DNA of 64,000 nucleotides from NCBI RefSeq assembly GCF_006345805.1, contig NC_043022.1:22444001-22508000 (forward strand). Reading direction: 5' to 3'. Origin of the DNA: Octopus sinensis. Its lineage: Eukaryota. Under the pieces are notes generated by a model. The model worked only from the letters and a program-made list of their open reading frames with translations, made no database searches and was not told the origin of the DNA. Below, in pieces: positions 57,157 to 57,507 of this stretch (position 1 is its first letter; each line of letters opens with the position of its first letter). The position numbers and the translations under genes were made by a program.

Positions 57157-57308
57157 GCACATGATACATCAGTGCGTGCCATGGTGTGGAGTCACAGCGA
57201 CACTTGGATGGTTACTGCAGATCATGCTGGTTATATAAAGTACTGGCAATCTAACATGAATAATGTAAAGATGTTTCAGGGCCATAAGGAACCAGTTCGA
57301 GGTATCAG
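57157..57308 (+). CDS. WDR33: WDR33 fifth coding exon (152 nt, WD40 repeat 2)
   Basis: TTACTAG|GCA...AG|GTACGC; [50 protein letters not shown] versus human [50 protein letters not shown]. Confidence 0.97.
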
Positions 57309-57507
57309 GTACGCTACACGGAGTCCACAACTGGCCTGGGCAGGCAGTAGTAGGAACGCTCTTACCTTCATTTCTGAAATTATTGGCACCATCTTCTGTG
57401 CCTTTTTTAATGTTGTTGCAGTTTATTTAACCATTACTAGATCTCAGGGTTCTTCTGTTGATGAAAAACTATTAATGTATGATGAAGACATCCTAGATTC
57501 TGGCTAA
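57309..57507 (+). CDS. WDR33: Putative alternative C-terminus of a short WDR33 isoform (intron read-through, TM-like helix)
   Basis: 65 in-frame codons after the donor, including [26 protein letters not shown]; stop at 57505-57507. No transcript evidence. Confidence 0.5.

Follow-up and report, generated by a model that had tools for sequence, protein, structure and literature searches.

The segment 57309-57507 of the window (by which we mean the whole 64,000-nucleotide stretch of the Octopus sinensis genome analyzed here, G000:C26:22444001-22508000 of a 2.72-Gb assembly with 13,516 contigs) is likely to be an intronic coding segment for the C-terminal end of a short form of WDR33, which would correspond in octopus to vertebrate WDR33v2 (rat NET14). 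For octopus, the open frame, its conservation among octopods, and a constraint on its nucleotides are directly observed, and the same junction behaves alike across bilaterians. A first-pass annotation of this DNA had put forward such an isoform as a read-through product of the equivalent of human intron 6. This proposal is supported; the octopus frame leaves full-length WDR33 at the same divergence point as the vertebrate V2-type proteins.

Usage of the donor at 57308/57309 would join coding exon 5 to an exon ~31.3 kb downstream. In a fraction of the octopus transcripts this donor would be skipped, and the ribosome would then read 65 more codons up to the stop TAA at 57505-57507. The resulting protein of 317 aa would combine the N-terminal region and the first two WD repeats with a C-terminal 20-residue hydrophobic segment. 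Judged by sequence, this segment—residues 275-294—probably anchors the protein in a membrane in a tail-anchored manner. As the intron extends over ~31 kb, cleavage and polyadenylation within it most likely terminate the message; hexamers at 58174 and 58191 are candidate signals. Lacking five of the seven propeller blades, the 317-aa form should be unable to take part in CPSF, an inability demonstrated for human V2.

The WDR33 gene and its read-through frame

A tblastn search with a WDR33 probe places five collinear WDR33 coding exons on the plus strand of the window, and joining them at GT/AG borders yields a single continuous CDS. The features of this gene are as follows:

43498-43830, plus strand: coding exon 1 of WDR33, 333 nt, ATG at 43498, donor GAG/GTATTC, encoding a proline-rich and polyQ N-terminus (tblastn and CDS assembly)
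45200-45268, plus strand: coding exon 2, 69 nt (tblastn, CDS assembly, and alignment to cDNA L021)
53561-53665, plus strand: coding exon 3, 105 nt (tblastn, CDS assembly, and alignment to cDNA L021)
55573-55668, plus strand: coding exon 4, 96 nt, region of the first WD repeat (tblastn, CDS assembly, and alignment to cDNA L021)
57157-57308, plus strand: coding exon 5, 152 nt, second WD repeat, preceded by AG at 57155-57156 and ending in phase 2 with CAG/GTACGC
57309-57314, plus strand: 5' splice site GTACGC (context CAG/GTACGC), matching 7 of 9 consensus positions
57309-57507, plus strand: CDS extension into the intron, including the stop TAA at 57505-57507 (ORF reading in the CDS frame)
57379-57438, plus strand: hydrophobic, uncharged core of 20 residues, a candidate membrane anchor (residues 275-294), with a Kyte-Doolittle 19-residue maximum of 2.23
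58174-58196, plus strand: two AATAAA hexamers (58174 and 58191), candidate intronic poly(A) signals and the first canonical ones past the stop (pattern scan)

Exon 1 aligns with the spliced cDNA contig L021 at 131-420. The coding exon sizes 69/105/96/152, which the first-pass annotation had matched to human WDR33, are confirmed for octopus and recur in Lottia and Trichoplax as derived from donor and intron coordinates. The end of exon 5 corresponds to the junction of human exon 6 and intron 6, and the divergence point of V2-type proteins is residue 252 in octopus vs residue 208 in vertebrates. The exon following 57308 starts at G000:C26:22532611, so that the intron spans ~31.3 kb.

Past 57308/57309, the WDR33 frame remains open for 66 codons counted from the junction codon, 65 of which are wholly intronic. 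Read-through at the other four WDR33 donors in the window extends over 8, 6, 33, and 34 codons, hence a 65-codon extension against 6-34 codons elsewhere, as first noticed, is borne out by ORF reading. CDS assembly and Pfam likewise agree with a product of 317 aa that carries two WD repeats: a Pfam WD40 match covers residues 198-231, and recognizable WD40 sequence reaches only up to the junction. The TM-like stretch originally marked at 57358-57435 comprises 26 residues with one Glu, and the hydrophobic, uncharged core occupies 57379-57438. Downstream of this core, an Arg and 22 further residues—23 in total—lead to the C-terminus. By sequence, the layout of a tail-anchored protein is given, with one hydrophobic segment near the C-terminus and a proline/glutamine-rich N-terminus that bears no hydrophobic signal peptide. 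On the Hessa hydrophobicity scale, the core would be borderline, at ~0 kcal/mol. The last 16 residues contain five acidic and one basic residue; the acidic tail of the initial description is thus correct for this sequence, but the second octopod clade, introduced below, does not retain it.

Two further descriptions of the region had to be revised. The donor had been called non-consensus, yet with 7 of 9 matches to CAG/GTAAGT it lies mid-range for this gene, whose other four donors match at 5, 6, 7, and 8 positions; a weak donor as the cause of read-through was hence rejected. The extension (GC 0.40) is indeed less AT-rich than the 500 nt upstream (0.32), but not than the 500 nt downstream (0.43).

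The candidate signals at 58174 and 58191 would imply a 3' UTR of ~0.7 kb. For the region of these signals, the comparison among octopods is bounded by contigs of the first clade that reach window position 58015 and by sequence of the second clade that is unalignable there. From ~100 nt past the signals, a SINE-like repeat (…ggctgcagccgtgctcgggcaccaccttgagg… / …gtgccatgcagtgggactgaact…) recurs in the long intron at window positions 58290-58660, and the same repeat is found in L002 at ~1490-1740, 3700-4020, and 4320-4600.

Several other origins of the extension were considered. A repeat or transposon origin was rejected, as the 351-nt segment is single copy—no second copy was found in the 2.7-Gb genome—and holds no tandem repeats. 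A Rfam search over 56800-58400 returned nothing above noise, no Pfam family matched the tail, and a protein search with the tail alone retrieved two already known octopod ORFs and nothing else. A hairpin at the donor (AGGUA 57307-57311 with UACCU 57363-57367, RNAalifold) was discarded, with z = 0.26, 119 of 200 shuffles being as stable, and no covariation. An antisense exon using the minus-strand donor AAG/GTAAGA at 57366-57374 was dismissed as well: conservation peaks on the wrong side of this donor, and L021 is sense to WDR33.

Conservation and transcription in octopods

Octopod relatives were found by a protein search with the 116-aa frame, from which the DNA of the ORF matches and of their cluster members was taken. 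This gave four further octopod sequences: L016-L019, genomic contigs from four runs with ~83% identity to the window over 1.2 kb; L020, a 233-kb ENA contig; L021, the cDNA contig named above; and L036-L039, genomic contigs from a further four runs. Together with the window, these form two clades, window and L016 on one side and L020, L021, and L036 on the other, with an exon 5 pS of 0.49-0.67 between the clades. Counted from the start of exon 5, the frame is open for 115-117 codons in all five octopod sequences. Early stops and frameshifts in related introns, against which the first-pass annotation had weighed its proposal, are absent from the four relatives. The last ~25 codons are unalignable between the clades, nevertheless the length of the frame is similar. 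All indels within the frame are 3 nt long, and indels of 1, 2, and 5 nt start right past the stop; this pattern is modest evidence, as some 3n indels also lie past the stop.

Identity declines with the distance from the donor in every octopod pair. It amounts to 96-100% over the first 66 nt (95.5-100% unrounded, all pairs), to 78-96% over the next 54 nt, and to 45-90% from there to the stop, followed by 54-87% over the 150 nt past the stop and 37-83% beyond. One more feature results from these alignments:

57309-57373, plus strand: near-invariant intron start, 65 nt, in which only 57319 and 57342 vary among the five octopod sequences

Within the first 22 tail codons, pS between the clades is 0.065 and pN 0-0.02, and variation at synonymous sites is hence 8-10 times lower than in exon 5. 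Such synonymous constraint points to a function at the RNA or DNA level, most simply the control of splicing vs read-through. Judged from this pattern, the near-invariant 65 bases probably also serve as an RNA element that sets the balance between the two. The hydrophobic core occupies the 18 codons that follow, where pN and pS between the clades are roughly equal, at 0.25-0.29 and 0.07-0.37, respectively. The replacements are mostly hydrophobic-for-hydrophobic (I/V, F/L, V/A, Y/F), with His and Pro gained in clade 2, and the Kyte-Doolittle maximum of the core in the other octopods stays at 2.01-2.16. Thus, a check of ORF and hydrophobicity conservation, as proposed at the outset, finds both frame and hydrophobic core kept in octopods, but gives no excess of synonymous over nonsynonymous change in the core. 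With synonymous sites conserved in the first 22 codons and pN about equal to pS in the core, the substitution pattern fits an RNA element as well as it fits coding.

These same observations are what gives weight to unproductive processing as the chief alternative. Here, the conserved intron start would be an RNA element that diverts WDR33 pre-mRNA to a truncated, intronically polyadenylated message and so controls the level of the full-length form, with the tail as a mere by-product. The reduced synonymous variability, the similar pN and pS of the core, and a conservation that falls smoothly from the splice site all speak in its favor. On the contrary, a by-product gives no reason to keep a frame open, and in the five octopod sequences the frame stays open across an unalignable stretch with 3-nt indels only. 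We consider this alternative rather unlikely as the explanation of the segment, and it may hold alongside the reading of the tail as an isoform C-terminus; the evidence from other animals, which bears on both, is given in the next section.

Transcript evidence comes from a related octopod. L021 (Logan contig SRR27666076_427034, 1587 nt) was found as P0104 with the 317-aa product as query. Aligned to the window, it shows exons 1-5 precisely joined and then continues for at least 745 nt into the intron, and it is collinear with the genomic L020 past the stop. As the upstream introns are removed while the intron after exon 5 is read through, L021 is RNA-derived, and it encodes a complete ORF of 307 aa (P0104) that carries the conserved tail. 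Spliced RNA that keeps the intron start, one of the checks initially suggested, is therefore found in this relative; the contig ends without a poly(A) tail, and it could be partly spliced pre-mRNA. The N-terminus of the protein differs among octopods: the Q-rich stretch encoded at window positions 43690-43750 (codons 51-70, exon 1) contains 16 uninterrupted glutamines, and the clade-2 cDNA P0104 has only a short QSQQQQ at this site.

The same junction across animals

Taken within the window only, neither the frame nor its hydrophobicity is beyond chance, and significance needs comparative evidence. Open runs of at least 65 codons start at 8% of the plus-strand positions in the introns of the gene, at 5.7% of all window positions, and at 4.4% of AG/GT sites. 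Equal hydrophobicity is reached by 10% of 279 background open frames of at least 60 aa and by 25% of the 44 among them on the plus strand of the gene, and 28% of the background open frames in the window pass the usual Kyte-Doolittle threshold of 1.6—T-rich introns easily give rise to hydrophobic translations. With a frame chance of 4-8% and a hydrophobic background of 10-25%, the observation in a single window is not significant by itself. If the human case is taken to single out this junction beforehand, both properties together have a chance of roughly 1%, a figure that is suggestive but post hoc.

Most matches from Logan and ENA came through a length filter that favors long frames. For this reason, an unbiased test was made on WDR33 gene models chosen solely for being annotated; all junctions were mapped exactly, and read-through was measured at each of them:

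Lottia gigantea: 53 codons at this junction, 1-31 at the other junctions
Batillaria attramentaria: 138 codons at this junction, 1-44 at the others
Ladona fulva (dragonfly): 44 codons at this junction, 1-13 at the others
Octopus (window): 66 codons at this junction, 6-34 at the others
Trichoplax adhaerens: 1 codon at this junction (immediate stop; consensus donor, 77-nt intron), up to 36 at the others

In all four bilaterian gene models, the longest read-through frame is found at this junction. The per-gene probabilities are 0.035, 0.009, 0.066, and 0.079 for Lottia, Batillaria, Ladona, and octopus, with a Fisher combination of 8e-4. The background for these rank probabilities consists of all plus-strand positions of each gene span and is conservative, as exons are still included. 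The hydrophobic maxima of the four frames, in the same order, are 1.6, 1.8, 1.7, and 2.2.

Tails at this junction are also seen in transcripts and annotated proteins. V2-type forms at the identical junction occur in all vertebrate classes (mammals, marsupials, birds, frogs, and zebrafish isoform 2), and from fish to mammals their tails start with R[FS]I[HP]N[IL]PFSVV; among these forms is a mammalian one of 326 aa with the 118-aa tail known from human V2. RefSeq annotates an isoform X2 of 300 aa for Patella vulgata as well as zebrafish isoform 2. Another transcript has the same N-terminus as the annotated protein of Ruditapes philippinarum but continues into RWDIAPPSGQ...IVLENFFYLTQT. In a tail family ending in ...GEAVT, one member, from another invertebrate, is a complete CDS of 303 aa that was assembled in nine separate RNA-seq runs, and beetle-type tails (RYLQLDSVLLKFVYIFI...) include an annotated protein of Oryctes borbonicus (269 aa). 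The Kyte-Doolittle 19-residue maximum is at least 1.7 in each of the 32 tails examined. Together with the frame ranks in the three other invertebrate gene models, these hydrophobic tails in gastropod, bivalve-like, beetle, and vertebrate sequences agree with the deeply conserved or convergent design envisaged in the first-pass annotation.

The sequences of the tails behave differently. They are conserved within lineages but unalignable between phyla, and even between Lottia and Patella, so that common descent of the tail cannot be demonstrated. Vertebrate tails (RFIHNIPFSVVP...) align among themselves from fish to mammals and with no invertebrate tail. The octopus tail has no detectable similarity to the mammalian one (BLASTP E = 0.5), in line with what had been noted from the sequence; homology was hence rejected, both with the V2 tail of vertebrates and with any Pfam family.

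Two observations on these invertebrate sequences concern RNA processing. The 3' UTR of a read-through WDR33 message from an invertebrate (L027-L034, runs SRR13891782-SRR13891814) contains eight AATAAA hexamers ~190-470 nt past the stop. Most of them sit in a repeated unit AAATAAAGGC(A)TATTGCCC, and the hexamer is the same signal that full-length WDR33 recognizes. In the ...GEAVT family, P0114 (228 aa, JGI) bears the tail RWDAVT in comparison with P0105 and P0107. This hints at an internal splice that removes the hydrophobic part and joins the conserved RWD to AVT, which would give a third, anchor-less form.

For unproductive processing, the picture across animals is again two-sided. Tails that are unrelated between phyla are what a by-product would look like; the eight hexamers in the read-through 3' UTR of another invertebrate are the very signal that the product of this gene reads, and the human gene carries several signals in and after intron 6 (PMC11019558). 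Nevertheless, a by-product does not account for the frame being the longest at this junction in four of four bilaterian gene models, nor for a hydrophobic tail in every lineage examined, and the human V2 protein has demonstrated activities (PMC11019558). A coincidence combined with intron-flank conservation—a chance frame in a T-rich intron, conserved bases that serve as splicing enhancer or silencer of a constitutive donor, and read-through contigs that are nascent, partly spliced pre-mRNA—would draw on the chance levels in the window, the missing poly(A) tail of L021, and the preference of database searches for long frames, but appears very improbable given a rank test on independent gene models that is free of the length-filter bias, the frame maintained in five octopod sequences, the identical complete CDS from nine separate libraries, the RefSeq isoforms of Patella and zebrafish, and the immediate stop in Trichoplax, which is what an unconstrained case looks like.

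Known counterparts and wider meaning

The reading of the octopus segment as an isoform C-terminus can be set against the human form. In human V2, intron 6 is retained, and two WD repeats are followed by a hydrophobic C-terminus of 118 aa; the protein resides in the ER and does not act as a polyadenylation factor (PMC11019558, PMC11331416). In 2024, WDR33v2 was presented by Liu and Manley as a striking case of one gene encoding two functionally unrelated proteins (PMC11019558). The first-pass annotation had assigned human V2 and V3 to one junction, which is right for V2, but V3 ends in intron 7 (PMC11019558).

The octopus form shares with human WDR33v2 (326 aa) and rat NET14 the gene and the junction, located after ...HKE-x-[IV]R-x-[IA] in phase 2, and the build of N-terminus, two WD repeats, and an intron-encoded hydrophobic C-terminus. 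It also shares with human WDR33v2 a donor that is off consensus at +4 and +6, and candidate poly(A) signals downstream in the intron. Differences lie in the tail, which has 65 aa and one hydrophobic segment in octopus vs 118 aa and several such segments in human, with no similarity found between the two sequences. The mode of retention might differ as well: with an intron of ~31 kb, it is unlikely that, as in human, the whole intron is retained and a signal in the following exon or intron is used. Human WDR33v2 is further characterized by ER localization, binding of STING and WIPI2, and no binding of CPSF, whereas the octopus form is known from its sequence. Regarding STING, an exon-wise search of the genome for the ligand-binding domain gave no match, but as the control genomes were silent too, this result is uninformative; a literature search on cephalopod STING returned nothing useful. 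The connection to innate immunity envisaged in the first-pass annotation gains no support here.

Further counterparts among invertebrates are the short forms of Patella vulgata (X2), of the Ruditapes-like transcript, and of Oryctes borbonicus (269 aa), which diverge at the identical junction and bear tails of 37-74 aa with Kyte-Doolittle maxima of at least 1.7. Unlike the junction, these tails are lineage-specific and unalignable with the octopod tail. In the searchable literature, we found no experimental work on these three forms and no mention of an invertebrate WDR33v2, the discussion being limited to human and rat (PMC11019558, PMC11331416). Already known are hence the V2-type isoform in human and rat and short forms predicted by automated annotation in Patella and others.

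Comparable situations exist in other genes for 3'-end processing factors. Intron 3 of CstF-77/su(f) and intron 1 of PCF11 are cases of conserved intronic polyadenylation in such genes. These sites have been described as feedback devices, and no separate function is known for their short products. WDR33 resembles them as the gene of a cleavage/polyadenylation factor with a conserved early intron in which the message can end prematurely; the difference is that WDR33 preserves the open frame itself along with its hydrophobic character.

Of greater interest than the octopus case is the pattern across animals, in which one junction combines a preserved frame with tails that are hydrophobic but not homologous; the placozoan lacks it. 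Its occurrence in octopods, gastropods, bivalve-like sequences, insects, and all vertebrate classes, and not in the placozoan, suggests that the short form is of ancient origin and under selection, and not a peculiarity of mammals. More tentatively, and with less than even confidence, we propose that WDR33 already gave rise to two unrelated proteins before protostomes and deuterostomes separated and has done so ever since, the choice between them being made at one intron: one is a nuclear reader of the poly(A) signal, the other is short, anchored in a membrane, and equipped with two WD repeats. Junction, open frame, and hydrophobicity of the tail would have been kept while its sequence turned over. 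The switch would be the lineage-specific, ultra-conserved intron start, perhaps together with downstream AAUAAA clusters that WDR33 itself reads. V2 would then have had its membrane role before the interferon system arose, and this role would not be primarily about vertebrate STING signaling. This raises the questions of what role the membrane form had before interferon signaling, of whether the tail need only be a membrane anchor, and of whether, in the gene of a polyadenylation factor, the choice of an intronic poly(A) site acts as a sensor. For work on this splicing/polyadenylation switch, the 65 near-invariant bases that open the octopod intron provide a defined target.

Two minor observations concern other WDR33 sequences. 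Vertebrate V3-type forms, in which the tail follows ...CHEERILR (e.g., P0159, P0161, and P0172), arise by read-through or alternative splicing past the next exon. Unlike V2-type tails, those of the V3 type are short, lack hydrophobicity, and show no conservation from species to species, and read-through at the V3-type junction covers only 14-15 codons in Lottia and Batillaria. In addition, small unplaced contigs carry at least five WDR33-like copies that are nearly identical to each other and poor in introns (loci L006-L010, L014, and L015): C12601 at 87126-87807 and 223050-223731, C9323:35388-36071, C9587:2497-3180, and C9748:49978-50661. Judged by their sequence, these copies could stem from a contaminant or parasite genome or could form a divergent multicopy paralogue; they are 39-53% identical to the human WD region vs 69-95% for the exons of the bona fide gene.
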